The position numbers and the translations under genes are program-made. From Hyphochytrium catenoides (lineage: Eukaryota; Protista; Hyphochytriomycota): a DNA stretch of 64,000 bases. The notes beneath the pieces are model-generated. The model was not told the origin of the DNA and ran no database searches. It saw only the letters and a program-made list of their open reading frames with translations. Position 1 is the stretch's first letter; every line of letters starts with the position of its first letter. Shown one piece after another: positions 36,883-52,200 of the stretch. The stretch spans positions 13,733 to 77,732 of the forward strand of contig FLMG01004054.1 of the NCBI GenBank assembly GCA_900088475.1, in the 5' to 3' direction.

Positions 36883-37946
36883 ATGAGGTTCAGGGAGCCC
36901 TTCATGTACCAGGACCGATGGATACCAGTGAGAACTGCCATTGCCCTCATGGCCCTGCAATACTTGGTGAGGCAACAAGGATTTTCTTGAAGGAAAATTC
37001 ATGTCTAAACCGCAACATCGCTCACAGGGTTTGCTTTCTGTCGCGGGCGGACTCGCGCCCGAGCTCTTGAGTCTTACCACAACGTTGTTTTATCATGTGA
37101 ACTACATATTGATGATTTGGAGCTTCTACACTGTAGTCCGGACAGACCCAGGGACACTCTATGGTATTGAATGCTCATTGTTGGAAGGAGAAGAGGCGAA
37201 AGAAAGGAATGTTAGGATCTCCCACGAAAGTGAAACAAAACTTGCCTGTTTGGCTAAGATTGCGGAAGCACACCTCGGCCGAAAACCAACGTATTGCGAA
37301 GCCTGCCATGATGCCAAGCCACCTGGCTTCCATCATTGCTCAAAATGCGATGCCTGTATTTTTGGAATGGATCATCATGTAAGTCTGTTCCCTTTACCTT
37401 GGTGAATTTGGGCCTCACTAACGCAAGCCATCGTTTCTGCAGTGCCCATGGGTATGTATTGGTCTTACCTCTTCCTTTCGTCTGGGCTACAAGTCACCCA
37501 AGCTCCTTTGTCTGTAGGTAAACAACTGCATCGGCTGGTTCAACAAGAAGAGCTTTCTTCTGTTTCTGGCCTATGCAGCAACCAGCTGCTTGACTACTTC
37601 TTGGGTGTGCGCCCCACTACTAACGTCACTTCACGACGTTCAGAAAGGGTCAGCACAGAATGCCGGCGATATGCGTCTTCTAACTCTCTTTGCCTGCTAC
37701 TGGGCCCTTTGTTTTGTTATTGGCCTCGTACTGGCTCTCTATTTAGCCTTCCAACTGCGCCTACTGAGCAAGGGCCAAACAACGCTTCAACTCCTAAGAA
37801 GTGGAAGAACAAAAAAGCATCGGGGTATAGGTTTCCCGTTGAGTCAAAAAGTGGCCGACGCCAATATTAGTGACGTCTTTGGAGACAATATTTTCATCGC
37901 CCTTCTTCCAATCAGCCAGCCCGTCTTGTTCGGCGCGAAACCTTAG
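36883..37946 (+). CDS. DHHC-type protein S-palmitoyltransferase (4 exons, including a 9-nt microexon)
   Basis: TDPG motif and the Cys-rich domain CEACHDAKPPGFHHCSKCDACIFGMDHH|CPW|VNNCIGWFNKKSFLLFL, followed by TM segments and GQTT(L)Q (TTxE-like). Confidence 0.9.
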
Positions 37947-38061: not shown

Positions 38062-39785
38062 TTATTTATCTTTCTTCCTCTTCTCCTTTTTTCGGCGTTT
38101 TCTTTCTTGTTCCTTCTCGTCAAGGTAATGCTTTACCTGAAGGAGTCATGGTCACGAGGAAGTACCATTTGTGGCGTAACAAGAACCAATCAAGGCAGAC
38201 CACACAGAAAGTATTGAAGTAGAATAGAAATGCTTACCTCGTTGTATCTTTGTTCAAACCTAGCGGCTATGTCTCCAGCCATGTTGTACACTGGCTCTCC
38301 GGGTCTATTAAAGGTGTGGGCATTCTTTACCATCAATCTTACATCAGCTGCGAAGCTCTCCAGGTCTTTATATTGACCAGCCGTCCATTTTTCCTACGCG
38401 TTGAAAGCAAGGCTCTTAAATGGGACAGAAGTAGCGAAGAGGACCACTCGGATAGAGTAAGCAAGGGGTGGCAGGGACTACAGCACAAGACCATGATGTT
38501 TGATGAAAGGAGACTAGGTGGCATGCGAACGAGAAGATTATTGATCAGGCAGCTCATCAGTGTGACTTTCTTCTACTTCTACCTTCATAGTCATGAGATC
38601 CATCGGAGTCTGGACGTATGTAAAGTAGTCCGGAACGCCGAGCTTCTTGCAATTCTGTCTCGTAATTTTCTGTGGGTTAATGCGTGAGCTATTGCTCAAG
38701 GCCCGGTGGGGAGCGTAATAAACTTCTTGCGTCACGCTGAACTTCCTGGGTCTCTCCCTCTCGGGTTCTAAAACGGTACCTGAGTAAAAGGATTCCCGTC
38801 ATTTAACTGCCACTGCGGCCATTTCAGACCCAAGAGGTCAGACAAGAGCTGCAGAATTAGTTTCTGAATCTCTTCAGCTCGTTCCTTGTCTCTTCTTTCC
38901 TTTTTCTGAAGGATGCCGCAGACGAGTCCGTTGGCTGTGGAGAAACTCCTAGGTCTCGTAAAACCAGGTTGATTGCTTACCCGCTTCTTTTTGTCTCTTT
39001 TTGCAGCGTCATCGTCCTCGGTGATCTTATTGCTGTGTAGAGTTACTGGGGCGGGGGTGGATACCCCAGATTGGTATGGTGGAGGTTCATTAGAAAGTGC
39101 GTCTCCTGACAGACAGCGTTAGAAGTGGTACAATGAGCTGTTGCCATCTCGGCCTTACCTGAGGCATCTGCCTTGAGCTTTATAACGGGAATGTGTGGCG
39201 TCACTTTAAGGGTGAAAGCAGCTTTGAGATCATTTTCGGAGAATGGTTCGATCGGTCGATCGAAGGGTTCAGACTTTAGCAGCTCCGCTAAGGCTATGCA
39301 GGAGCAGAAGAAGCAGTAAGGTCGGGTCAATCCACTCAAGAGCGACACAGAAGCATTTTTCTAAACTCACAAGCCTTTCCTGGTTTCTCATCTTCTGGCA
39401 TGCGAAGCTCTCGTACAAAATGGGCGTAAGTTCTTGGTAACGATGCCTACAAAGAAGAGAATGAGCTTTTGTTGGGAGACTCAAAATATGGCGCTCTTTA
39501 CCTCTGATAACTGCTGGTAAGGTTCCTTCAACCCGTAATAGGAGAAAAGACCATCTTTTGAAACGAAGGCTGGGTCACTGGGGACTGCGAACGAGAACAA
39601 CTGAGACCATTAGAGCTGATAGACTTCGTTGCATGGAGGGTTAACATACATTCGTTCGGATCTCGGCATAAGTATAGTTCGCTTAGCGGCACTTCCTGCA
39701 CGTCCTCCTCCATAAAATCGCCGTCTCTCCTAACTATCGTCTGTGGTCCATTGCTTTGCTCTGTTTTACCGTCCGACTTTGACAT
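38062..39785 (-). CDS. MED19: Mediator subunit Med19-like domain fused to a C-terminal bromodomain (multi-exon)
   Basis: Spliced N-terminal part LYLCRD...DGLFSYYGLKEPY...SLPRTYAHFVREL...SLAELLKSEPFDRPIEPFSENDLKAAFTLK matches the Med19/Rox3 pattern from recall. A basic stretch follows, then NPFTQ|KITRQNCKKLGVPDYFTYVQTPMDLMTMK|EKWTAGQYKDLESFAADVRLMVKNAHTFNRPGEPVYNMA (bromodomain) and a K/R-rich tail. Confidence 0.75.
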
Positions 39786-40605: not shown

Positions 40606-41976
<1,371 letters not shown>

Positions 41977-46265: not shown

Positions 46266-49200
46266 ATGGCTAGCCCTGTGGAGGGAGAGAGGGATGTGAG
46301 GTTTCAGGAACCCGAAGAAGGGAGGCCTTCGGGACAGGAGGACAACGGGCAGAGAGCCAAGAAGGGCCCCGGAATGCGGTCCATGCGCTATGACGACACT
46401 CCCTTAAAGTATGTTTTGGTATTGTTCACGTTTCCTGTGTGCATATGATGCGGAGTCTGACGTGCTATTGCAGTGAAGGAACAACTCCTATAACAACGCA
46501 TTGGGTTGGCTACTTGAAAAACTTCGGAGTGTACCGAACAAGGAAAGACCTGCGGCTGCTAATCATTGTGCAGTGGGGATTTACTTGTTTTGCGATATTC
46601 CCGGTCATTCTAGGGGTGTTTCTCTTTGCTGTCATCCCTATGATGCTAACGGTAAGAGAGCGACTGTTTGTTCCCTTGGCGCAGCTAACATCGACACATC
46701 TAGCTCTTTGCTTGCCTCTTCGGCTGGTATGGATCAAGCTATCTAATTGTCAAGCCCCTCATGTGGTACTGCTTCTTGTCCTTCTTAAGGTAAGGCTCTA
46801 ACGCACAGAGTCGGTGCTTTTGGGTTGTTAGTTTTGTCAACCTCAGTTGATACTTCTGACGCGACAAGCTAGTATGTCTCTCAACTGTCAACAATGACGC
46901 ACGTGAATAGTGTTCTTATTTATTCTCGCCTTGGCCAACCGTGGTCGTGTCTGTCTTCTACCGTCTGTTTTTTGTGTGCCTCTTGTGCTGTTCACCCACT
47001 CATCTTCGAATGCGCTTCTTATCGCTGCAATATGCCCCCAGTAATGTGGTCAGCATCACGTTCTTCGGTGTGGGACTTTATCATTATACTGGTGATGACA
47101 GCACAGACTCGACCGCCTATATTATGCTAGGTGAGTTTTCCCCTTACTCCCGTTATCTTCAAGAAGATTGACAATCTCTCTTATGCAAGTGTTTTCGACG
47201 GTCGTTGTCATCGTGACAGCCTTCGGGGGCATTGTCTTTGCCCTCCATTTGCGAGCGCATATTATAGATCTTATGACCGAGTCGGGCTATGTGAGAGCCA
47301 TGCGAGTAGAGACGGACCACATCCAATTAGAGGCAAGGAAGCGCAAGAGGAGAGGTAAGATGTATAAAAGCATATCACACCCTGCCCTTAGCCCTGCTTA
47401 TCAAAGCACCACTTGCTCAATTACCTCAGGTGAGATATCGAGCGGTATGAGAAGTATTAGCATTGGTGCCGATGCAGAAATTATCCAAACCATGCATCAA
47501 TCCCAAGATGAAGCTTTGGCTGCAGCGTTGACGGAAGAGCCACCGAAGACACAGAAGCGTCCCTGGCAGTTCTGGAGACCGCCTCCACCGGACCCGAGTA
47601 AACCACAACGATCCAACTTTATGACAAACTCGGTCATTACGTCAAAATACACTCCTTTGACGTTCATCTTTATTTTCTTGAGGGACCAGTTTAGTAGGGT
47701 TGCCAACCTGTACACCCTCATCATCGTCGTACTTTGTTTCTTTTCTTTTTCTCCGGTATCACCTTCGGCGGCATTAGCCCCGCTTCTTATCGTTATGGTG
47801 ACGGCGGCAATCAAAGAAATTGCGGAGGACCTAAAGCGAAAGAAAGCTGATCGGCAGTTGAACGATCGGCCCGTCTCAGTTTCTGACCAGGACACAGAGG
47901 CTCTTTCCGAGAAAACATGGGACAAAGTCGCTGTAGGTGATGTCGTCATTCTCAGATCTGGGAATATTGTTCCTGCAGATTGTCTTGTCATCTCTACCTC
48001 GAGAGGGGATGGAAGGTGCCACATAGAGACGGCCAGTTTGGATGGAGAAACCAACCTCAAGCTTAAAATGGCTCCAAAGTTCACCAGGAATATTAGGTCA
48101 TCAAAGGAGATCCACCAGCAGTACACTTTGTCTTTACTTTGTGAGCCTCCGTCGGCCAACCTCTTTGAATTCGATGGCACTCTTTTTGGCTACAGAGGGG
48201 AGTTGGCTCAGGACGACTCAAAAGGAACAGGCTGGCAGCTAGAGAAGGAGGAACAGGGAGGAAGCCAGGAAGAAGGAGATAGCGGTGCAGAGGACTCTGC
48301 GGAGGACGTCGTTCGCACGATCTCAATCAACCAAGATAATATGCTCTGGAGGGGGACAGTTATACGGAACACTAAGTGGGTCATCGGATTGGTGGCATAC
48401 ACAGGCAAAGAGTCAAGAATAGAACAGAACTCTGTTACCAAGAAGAGCACCAAGAAAACGAAAACAGAATTGCTGCTCAACGGTATGCTGGTTATTCTCC
48501 TTGTCGTTCTCTTCTCTCTGGCTGTGCTCTGCACCCTGCGCAGGAGCGACTTTGTCCTGGTGGAAACGGACTCCATAGCCAGTGGGCGGACACCGGAGGG
48601 CGTCTGGTACTTAGGAGGAGGAAAATCCTATCAAGAATTCACCTTTATTTCCTACGTCATCCTTTTCAATAGCATGATTCCCCTCTCACTTTACGTGACG
48701 ATGGAGGCGGTGCGCTTTGTCCATGCCAGCTACATAGACAATGACCTCCTGATGTTCGATGAGGCTTCTCAAACGCCTGCTCAAGCCAGAAATAGTAACA
48801 TCAACGAGGACTTGGGGCAGGTTCAGTATATATTCTCTGATAAGACTGGGACCCTCACCTGCAACGAAATGCTCTTTGCAAAGTGTACTATAGCCGGTAA
48901 GGGATATAGCTGCTACTGTCTTCTCTTCGCCTAAGAGCCCGGGTGGCACTGGTTGTCTGTAGCACGAGTCAATTCTAAACCGTTACTCTTGATCGCTCAA
49001 TTTTCTAGCTGATACTCTTCGGGATTTGCCTTACATTACCTGCGCCCCCAAAGCCATCATCTTCCGCTCTTCTTTGTGCACCATCTTTGACAATGGCCCT
49101 CTTACCACCTGTGCTTCTCCATGGCCAGGTCTGCGATACGGAGATGCGGAGACCGATGTACCTCCAAGGCCGGGTACTCGCTTTTACGATACACGATTGC

Positions 49201-52200
49201 TATCTCGCTTGGAAGAGGGCCATAAAAGTGCAAGAGACATCCATCTGTTTCTCCTTCTCCTTACGCTTTGCAATACTGTAGTGCCCGAGCACAGTAAAGG
49301 CGCTGAGGAGGATCTACCTACTTCCTACCAGGCAGCCTCACCTGACGAGCTATGCCTTGTACAAGCTGCCAGGGTAAGACAGAGGAGCCAACAGCGTCTT
49401 ATTTATCTCGCTTTTTTATCTTTTCCCCTTGTCAACAGTCCTCCTTACATGGGCAGTCTCACGCTACTTCGTCTTAAAGCGCCATTCTTATCCATCCCTT
49501 ATTTGTTTTGCTCCTTCTCCTTTAGGACTTAGACTACATTTTGTTGAATCGGAGTGGAAAGCGCGTAAGGATACGTGTTTTGGGTAAGTCTGTCGCAAGA
49601 TCCGCCACTTTATGCTGAGGTCCCCACATCGATCTATTTTTTATCCCTTCTAAGCGTCAATATAACGCCCTAAGACACCTTCCTGTTCCTTTAGACGGTG
49701 GTGCTAACAAAATCTCTCATAGGCACGGAGCAGACATGGGAGGTCCTGAATGTGCTCGAATTTAGCAGTGATAGAAAACGAATGAGCGTCATTGTACAGA
49801 GCCCTGAAGGAAGGCTGCTGCTTTTTTGCAAGGGCGCAGATAGCGTCATCTTCCAAAGGCTCCATAGAGACTCCAGTCAAGCTGTCAAACAAGTTACCAA
49901 GGGTCACCTTTCTGACTATGCATGTGACGGTTTGAGGACGCTCTCTATGGCCTGGAAGGAGCTACAGCCAGCACACTACCATCAATGGAACGCCGAGTAT
50001 CACGCCGCGTCCACTGCTTTGGCTCATCGAGCAGAGAAAGTGGCCGAGGTGTCGGAGAGAATGGAGAGGGAGCTTTACCTCATTGGGGCCTCTGCCATAG
50101 AAGACCGCTTGCAGGATGGAGTCGCTGACACCATAAGTTCACTGAGGGAGGCAGGCATTAAGTTCTGGATTCTGACAGGTAACGCTGAAGGGCTTCATTG
50201 GGGCGCATGTATCAGTCAGAAATGCAGCTCGTTATCAGGGTAGTTCTAACTCATGTTTGGATTTCAGGAGACAAAAGAGAAACAGCGACTAGCATCGGTC
50301 TCTCGACTCAGACCATTACTGAGGATATGGAGATTCTCATCCTGAATGAGCACAAGAAAGATGAGCTTAGAGCGCGCCTGGAAAGATTGCATGAAGAGCT
50401 AGTGGGAGGAGACGAGGAGGAGTTTTTCCGCAGTGCAAGCTACCAATCTATGCTTTGGCGAGCACTAAAGAACCTCATTAAATACTTCTGGGGTCAGGTG
50501 TGGCTGGTGATGACGGGCAGAAAGAGCAAAACTCAGAAGTCAAAGCGGTAGGTCGTGGTCTGCATCCATATGTGGTTGCCGCAGTCTGTCCTGCCTTTTT
50601 GAAGCATTATCCAGTAGCCTATTTAAAGTTCAGAATTATGGCAGTGACATCAAGTTTGTTTATCACAGGGCTCGACCAAAGAGGACAGTGGAGCGACACA
50701 GAGAGCTTGATCGCAAGCAGTCAATGAATGGACGGAATGGCGTGGTTCGCATTGAAGCACCGCCTCGGATGAACTCTCGTCTGAACATCACTGTGGAAAG
50801 CCCTCCAGCCCAAGCTGAGATGAACCATGAGGCTGATTATGTCAATATTGAAGAGGTAGGACAACCGTGGACCTCTTGTCATACGATGTGCGCCGTAAGC
50901 CATTTGTGTGGAACGTGTCATCTGCGTTTGTTCACGTGATTTTTAGAAGAGTAGCTGATTTGATGTTGGCCCTTGGTATCGGCAAAGAGTTCCTGCTCAA
51001 GGTTCTGGAGTGCATTAGTCCGTTCTATTTCCACCCTTATCACGTCTTTCTGTTGACGTCAATATTGACTCTGTAGGTTTTGGAGGGCTCTGAGTTTGAG
51101 ATGCAGGACCTGGATGAGACCGATGACTCTGACATTCTAGAGGTGGAATACGGCATGGTCATCGACGGACCAACCTTAAAGCTTGCATTAGAGAGCGATG
51201 TAAAATACCTCTTCGCTTCCGTTGCACGTATCTGCAAATCAGTTATATGTTGCCGATGTAGCCCATCGCAGAAGGCGGCTGTGGTCTCACTAATTGCAGA
51301 ACCCGCCCTCGCCTACAGTGCTGGCAAGATTGCCCTTGCCATTGGGGACGGAGCAAACGATGTACCAATGATATGTGCAGCTAACGTCGGTGTTGGGATA
51401 AGCGGAAAGGAGGGAAGGCAGGCAGTGCTAAACAGCGACTTTGCTATAGCACAGTTCAGATATTTGAAGAGATTGCTGCTGGTGCATGGGAACTACAGCT
51501 ACAAGCGCATGGCCAAGCTCATTCTCTTCTCCATTTTCAAGAATGTGGCCCTTTGCTACTCTATCTTCTTCTATGCGAACCAAGACAAGTACAGCGGTCT
51601 CCTTCCCTACTTTGACGTGCTCTTCACCTTTTACAACGCCCTCTTCACCACTATTCCCATCGTGTTCGTCGCCATGTTGAATCAAGATATCAGACCTGAA
51701 GGGTTAGAGCAGTATCCTGCCCTGTACTCGAACGGATTGCTCAGTCGATCGTTCAATATTGCATCGTTTCTAGGTAGGACTCTAGAGCAAGACTGATAGC
51801 GGTCAAAGGAACAATAGGCTGATGCTGCTAGCTCTTTTACGTTTCCTTACTGCCCTCTTACTGACTGCAATCTGGACGCCGCTGCTTCCTAGAGGCCGTA
51901 GATATTCTGTCCTCCGCCCTTTTTGTTATCCAGAAACTAACATACGGTCATTTGCTCGATCCCGCTCTTTCAGGGTGGTTTTTGTTGGGCGTGTGGCATG
52001 CCTGGGTGATAAATATTGTGCCCTGGAGCGCAGAGAGCTATGACGTCACAAAGGCTTTTCCTGAAGGTGCTGTTGCAGCGTCGTCCGGTCTATGGGCGAC
52101 CGGTATCGCAGCTTATATCTGCCTGATAGCAGCCTCCACACTTCAGGTAGGTATTTCTTCACGCTATAAGCTTCCTGAGTAGCGCCAGCTCGCTTCAAAA

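Follow-up and report, generated by a model that had tools for sequence, protein, structure and literature searches.

A Hyphochytrium catenoides bromodomain protein whose N terminus weakly resembles plant-type Med19

Introduction

Animals use separate BET proteins to couple acetylated chromatin to Mediator. MED19 itself has no reader domain in human (PDB 7emf chain S), and plant MED19 is without a bromodomain: AtMED19-1 is a protein of 221 aa made up of a core and a K/D/R/H tail. Polybromo-1 combines six bromodomains with BAH and HMG domains. In the human PIC-Mediator assembly, the +1 nucleosome is contacted by MED19 and MED26 (Chen et al., cited in PMC9986247). Bourbon's criteria for Med19 include a basic region downstream of the core (PMC2475620).

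Here we describe a gene in the window (the whole 64,000-nucleotide stretch of H. catenoides DNA that was analysed; all positions refer to it) predicted to encode one bromodomain behind an N terminus that resembles Med19 weakly. With BRD4 and other BET proteins the predicted protein shares the reader fold, exon 8 aligning with BRD4 BD2 and exon 7 with BRD4 BD1, but it has one bromodomain rather than two, no ET domain and a length of about 312 aa. Its likeness to polybromo-1 is confined to the bromodomain. If the Med19 resemblance reflects homology, the reader would be part of Mediator, whereas BET proteins are separate partners. That Mediator here contains a histone reader of its own is thus a possibility, as yet unproven.

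Gene structure

Positions 39785..38062 of the minus strand can be read, from the sequence alone, as nine exons that join into one open frame of 312 aa (model A); a look-up of RNA sequencing runs came back empty. Splice analysis gave a second version with an alternative in-frame linker and 357 aa (model B). The features of the locus are as follows.

38062..39785, minus strand: complete coding region from ATG to TAA, in nine exons; 312 or 357 aa
39650..39785, minus strand: exon 1, residues 1-45, acidic/polar N terminus; begins at the first in-frame ATG after a stop
39502..39584, minus strand: exon 2, residues 46-73; LFSYYGL (39549-39526) aligns with plant MED19 'LIshYKL'
39371..39446, minus strand: exon 3, residues 74-98; SLP (39443-39435) coincides with the L-P of plant MED19, which is nearly invariant
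39159..39293, minus strand: exon 4, residues 99-143; the motif IEPFSENDLKAAFTLKVTPHI (39252-39190) holds nearly all of the Med19-like signal
38981..39045, minus strand: exon 5, linker, acidic then basic (KRDKKKR); an alternative start at 39105 would add 20 residues
38906..38980, minus strand: intron 5, 75 nt, stop-free and a multiple of three
38780..38905, minus strand: exon 6, remainder of the basic linker, presumed first bromodomain helix and 'NPF' shelf
38583..38669, minus strand: exon 7, ZA loop, in which lie PDYF (Tyr codon 38627-38625) and PMDL, from Pfam and PDB alignments
38238..38393, minus strand: exon 8, final two helices of the bromodomain; the acetyl-lysine-anchoring Asn in HTFN occupies 38309-38307, from Pfam and PDB alignments
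38062..38136, minus strand: exon 9, K/R-rich tail EKEQERKRRKKEKRKKDK and TAA, from the spliced translation

The ATG at 39785 is the first Met of its own open stretch and has an in-frame stop upstream; the TAA stop at 38064-38062 is overlapped by an AATAAA. All eight introns (65, 55, 77, 113, 75, 110, 189 and 101 nt) have GT..AG ends, and their junctions are phase-compatible even though six of the eight shift the frame. Retention of any intron other than intron 5 leads to a stop within 3-40 codons. When the long ORFs of the window were used as the codon-usage reference, the in-frame per-codon log-likelihood was positive in each of the nine exons (0.12-0.29 bits per codon, with tubulin at 0.31) and near zero or negative in the introns. 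As a gene model, the predicted bromodomain protein is real. The sequence-only reading, which had linked these pieces by in-phase splicing into one gene, is confirmed by the GT..AG introns, the fitting phases and the coding-type codon usage of every exon. The strings that it had picked out (GLFSYYGL, SLPRTYAHFV, IEPFSENDLKAAFTLK, PDYF, HTFN and the K/R-rich tail) are all present in the spliced translation.

The two models differ in the linker. Intron 4 has a second in-phase acceptor, which would move the start of the next exon from 39045 to 39105, and the 20 codons gained in this way look coding. Intron 5 can be retained with the frame kept. Because of this acceptor and of the stop-free intron 5, the length of the linker is uncertain, with up to 45 residues more than in model A.

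An alternative is that two adjacent genes, a small Med19-like one and a bromodomain one, have been falsely joined by in-silico splicing. The open stretch at 39118-38771 (frame 0) has no Met, and the first Met of the bromodomain half lies inside the domain, in exon 7; there is no in-frame Met upstream of that exon. A single gene is the simplest reading because the bromodomain half is without its own start codon; for that half to be a gene in its own right, a further exon upstream would have to have been missed. Exons 4 and 6 are separated by 254 nt, most of it open in phase, the exon 4 donor is in phase with both candidate acceptors, and every other junction is in phase as well. Two features point the other way. 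Retention of intron 4 adds 38 codons before a stop and gives a 181-aa product without the bromodomain, and the 189-nt intron 7 is long and its donor, GTAGAA, weak. The exon 7/8 junction restores a continuous Pfam match (described below), which speaks for one gene. We regard a false join of two genes as very improbable. The 181-aa product also allows a variant of this alternative, in which the same locus yields, in addition, a Med19-like-only isoform through retention of intron 4.

Bromodomain

The spliced bromodomain core (residues 186-274, an 89-residue query) scored 60.7 bits on Pfam PF00439 (E 1.4e-16; curated cut-off, 21.7 bits) and covered profile positions 23-80 of 84 without a break. 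Taken singly, exon 7 matched the profile at 26-43 and exon 8 at 47-82, with 16.8 and 34.7 bits. The spliced score exceeds the sum of the two pieces, which confirms the exon 7/8 junction.

Alignments to PDB chains agree with this assignment. The ZA loop 'KKLGVPDYFTYVQTPMDLMTMK' aligns to BRD4 BD1, with PDYF..PMDL on BRD4 'PDYY..PMDM'. The Asn of HTFN aligns with the conserved acetyl-lysine-anchoring Asn of BRD4 'YKYN' and polybromo 'KTYN'. Exon 8 scored 25.6 bits against BRD4 BD2, and its best single-domain match in PDB was polybromo-1 bromodomain 2 (22.1 bits; 'NAKTYNEPGSQVF' aligned with 'NAHTFNRPGEPVY'). Membership in PF00439 together with the key residues indicates that the bromodomain is genuine, and it most likely binds acetyl-lysine on histone tails.

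It had been proposed from the sequence that the domain is complete and that it retains the acetyl-lysine-binding Tyr and Asn. The alignments to BRD4 and polybromo bear out both residues. An intact bromodomain is supported by the 60.7 bits of the core, the PDY Tyr and the anchoring Asn. Exon 6 alone, an amphipathic L-rich stretch followed by NPF, matched no profile and no PDB bromodomain, and the Pfam alignment begins at position 23; the assignment of the first helix, and with it the description as a complete domain, is for this reason presumptive. None of the pieces matched an ET domain, and the bromodomain count is one. With a single bromodomain and no ET domain, the protein is not a BET protein.

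Resemblance to Med19

The N-terminal region had been called Med19-like by eye. Pieces of exons 1-4 gave no match in Pfam or PDB, MED19 chains included, and the spliced N-terminal core (residues 47-135) matched no Pfam family at E values up to 10 and no PDB chain. As a control we used the 89-residue core of Arabidopsis MED19, with the sequence taken from supplement file 3 of PMC6770253. This core likewise misses the Pfam Med19 and Rox3 models, so the Pfam negative is uninformative on plant-type Med19. With the Arabidopsis core, 108 short plant MED19 sequences were collected, several of them named 'mediator subunit 19a' at their source, and no precomputed Pfam domain was present on any of these fragments. 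Since both the core and the fragments go unmatched, surveys based on Pfam will miss plant-type Med19.

An unbiased Smith-Waterman comparison, in which the entire spliced protein was set against the Arabidopsis core, gave a collinear alignment over residues 58-131 with three gaps and a score of 45, and reproduced what had been seen by eye. This score was reached by 13-26 of 3000 shuffles (P of about 0.004-0.009) and exceeded by 1 of 441 six-frame stretches of the window. One 90-aa stop-free stretch at about 49009-49278 on the plus strand, which we take to be a chance resemblance, scored 47 by Smith-Waterman and 23.3 by hhalign against plant MED19. That such a decoy scores like the candidate means that the pairwise signal is weak.

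Alignment A1 comprises 75 of the 108 plant sequences; its best match in PDB was human MED19 (7emf_S and 8t1i_N; E 6.5e-4), so A1 is a true Med19 profile. Against A1, hhalign aligned residues 58-133 collinearly over 76 columns with 26% identity, a score of 27.7-28.4, a probability of 35-43% and P from 2.5e-4 to 4e-4. For a single comparison fixed in advance, a P of 3e-4 is good; across a library of 20,000 families it would amount to an E of about 5-8. The resemblance was originally picked by eye among many genes. None of 700 shuffles reached 27.7 (mean, 11.3; standard deviation, 2.2; maximum, 19.1; z of about 7.5), and the reversed sequence scored 9.6. Among the six-frame stretches of the window the highest score, 24.7, was that of exon 4 itself, followed by the best true decoy at 23.3. 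HMMER with a profile of 81 plant MED19 sequences gave 6 bits, confined to the last block, and 3 of 3000 shuffles scored higher. A plant model built by hmmbuild --enone was too narrow and left the window protein unmatched.

Nearly all of the Med19 signal comes from the one 21-residue motif, IEPFSENDLKAAFTLKVTPHI. Residues 109-145 alone scored 23.4 by hhalign (P 3.7e-4, z 6.1). Residues 30-108 alone scored 13.1 (P 0.14; reached by 30 of 200 shuffles), in a collinear register. In the last block, IEPFSENDLKAAFTLKVTP, all eight plant positions that are invariant or nearly so (I, P, F, L, A, F, L and P) are conserved; across the whole core, the window protein conserves only 7 of the 16 invariant ones. 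Most of the block common to plants and human, 'G..ELTG..[DN]LI[ST]HY.L....FC.K', is lost: only L, S, Y, L and some hydrophobic positions remain, with substitutions at G, E, G, D, F and C. The plant last block was also tried as a PDB query; it did not find human MED19 and returned only chance matches to YggS at 14-17 bits.

The resemblance to plant MED19 (Arabidopsis MED19a/AtMED19-1 and relatives) consists of collinear blocks, L-[IF]-S-x-Y-x-L, ten residues, SLP, L-x-x-L-[IL], I-x-P-F-x4-L-x2-A-F-x-L-x3-P and a basic low-complexity stretch. The identity of the window protein to these proteins is low (about 26%); the 'GPRELTG' block is missing from it, as are 9 of the 16 invariant residues. With human MED19 it has in common the L, S/T, Y and L of 'NLITHYNL', kept in LFSYYGL, and a basic tail; it matches no MED19 chain in PDB detectably. 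In the spliced translation, a basic stretch, KRDKKKRKKERRDKER, follows the core and another, EKEQERKRRKKEKRKKDK, ends the protein. Basic stretches are common in unrelated nuclear proteins.

These data leave two readings of the N terminus close together. The protein may be an ordinary single-bromodomain nuclear protein with a lineage-specific N terminus unrelated to Med19, the likeness being a short motif plus chance, and its reader docked onto some other chromatin complex. The missing Pfam and PDB matches and the 6 bits with the plant HMMER profile are in keeping with this, as are the limitation of the signal to 21 residues, the loss of the universally conserved Med19 block and the natural decoy of the window, with its hhalign score of 23.3 and Smith-Waterman score of 47. 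It is harder to reconcile with an hhalign score higher than that of any of the 700 shuffles or any unrelated natural stretch in the window, with the collinear register of the weak N-terminal blocks, with the full conservation in the last block or with the basic region that follows the core, as it does in Med19. We give an unrelated N terminus somewhat less than an even chance. Homology of the N-terminal region to Med19, judged from the same alignments, has about an even one. The earlier description as Med19-like is therefore upheld in part: the collinear alignment to the plant profile and the basic region speak for it, while the lack of Pfam and PDB matches, the loss of the plant-human block and the HMMER score of 6 bits do not.

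A possible role at Mediator

In the explanation that we favour, a single gene encodes a small nuclear protein of 312-357 aa, in which about 100 N-terminal residues are followed by a basic NLS-like linker, a single canonical bromodomain and a basic tail. The N-terminal region is most likely a docking module, and we read it preferentially as a Med19 core of plant type that has diverged strongly. We consider this explanation as a whole (one gene, a bromodomain reader and a divergent plant-type Med19 docking module) to be evenly balanced between right and wrong.

If the N-terminal region is a Med19 core, the reader would sit on the Mediator hook, which touches the +1 nucleosome in human complexes. 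The contact of MED19 with the +1 nucleosome provides a plausible mechanism for the bromodomain fusion. In this stramenopile, a relative of the oomycetes, the protein would then be a Med19 hook subunit with its own bromodomain, and Mediator would read acetylated +1-nucleosome tails directly, without a BET-type adaptor. This further step is tentative, and in our estimate somewhat more likely to be wrong than right. Residence of the protein in Mediator is possible. A role in Mediator is an attractive, unproven possibility that draws mainly on one 21-residue motif.

Were it true, this Med19 with an acetyl-lysine reader of its own would offer a natural experiment in which chromatin reading and the Mediator-nucleosome contact are fused. 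It would also supply a Med19 candidate for a group in which the subunit was reported to be difficult to detect (PMC2475620). Should the Med19 likeness be due to chance, the gene would encode one more small bromodomain protein, of modest interest.

A lead from Plasmodium was set aside. BDP4 co-precipitates weakly with Med31 (PMC9088918), and its core complex is of the SWIB/CHD1 type, not Mediator (PMC7145593).

Relatives and neighbouring genes

A HMMER search with the exon 4 piece gave 0 matches in 1.84 billion representative proteins, and a word search with it gave no candidate among proteins of 0.55-1.75 times the query length (longest stop-free piece, 116 aa). No relatives of exon 4 or exon 8 were found in the metagenome collection. 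In the ESM Atlas, exon 4 led to unnamed clusters only and exon 8 to plain bromodomain clusters. These searches covered exon pieces, and the word search a range of target lengths below that of fusions of 300-400 aa; within this scope no second species with a Med19-bromodomain fusion was found. Among the papers searched, no description of a Med19-bromodomain protein was found.

An intronless beta-tubulin ORF of 446 aa lies at 40606-41946 on the minus strand, 820 nt upstream on the same strand as the bromodomain gene. Its exact product is absent from the public collection. The best full-length named match is from Phytophthora cactorum, and the 96% identity between the two places the genome near oomycetes. 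The P. cactorum gene just downstream of beta-tubulin (L001:12032-13130) encodes 298 aa with no Pfam match; it bears no relation to the bromodomain gene, and synteny is therefore absent.

On the other side of the bromodomain gene, a convergent multi-exon gene, fragmented in the ORF list, occupies 37001-37946 on the plus strand. Its last open stretch stops at 37946, only 116 nt from 38062, and the 3' ends of the two genes must therefore nearly touch or overlap.
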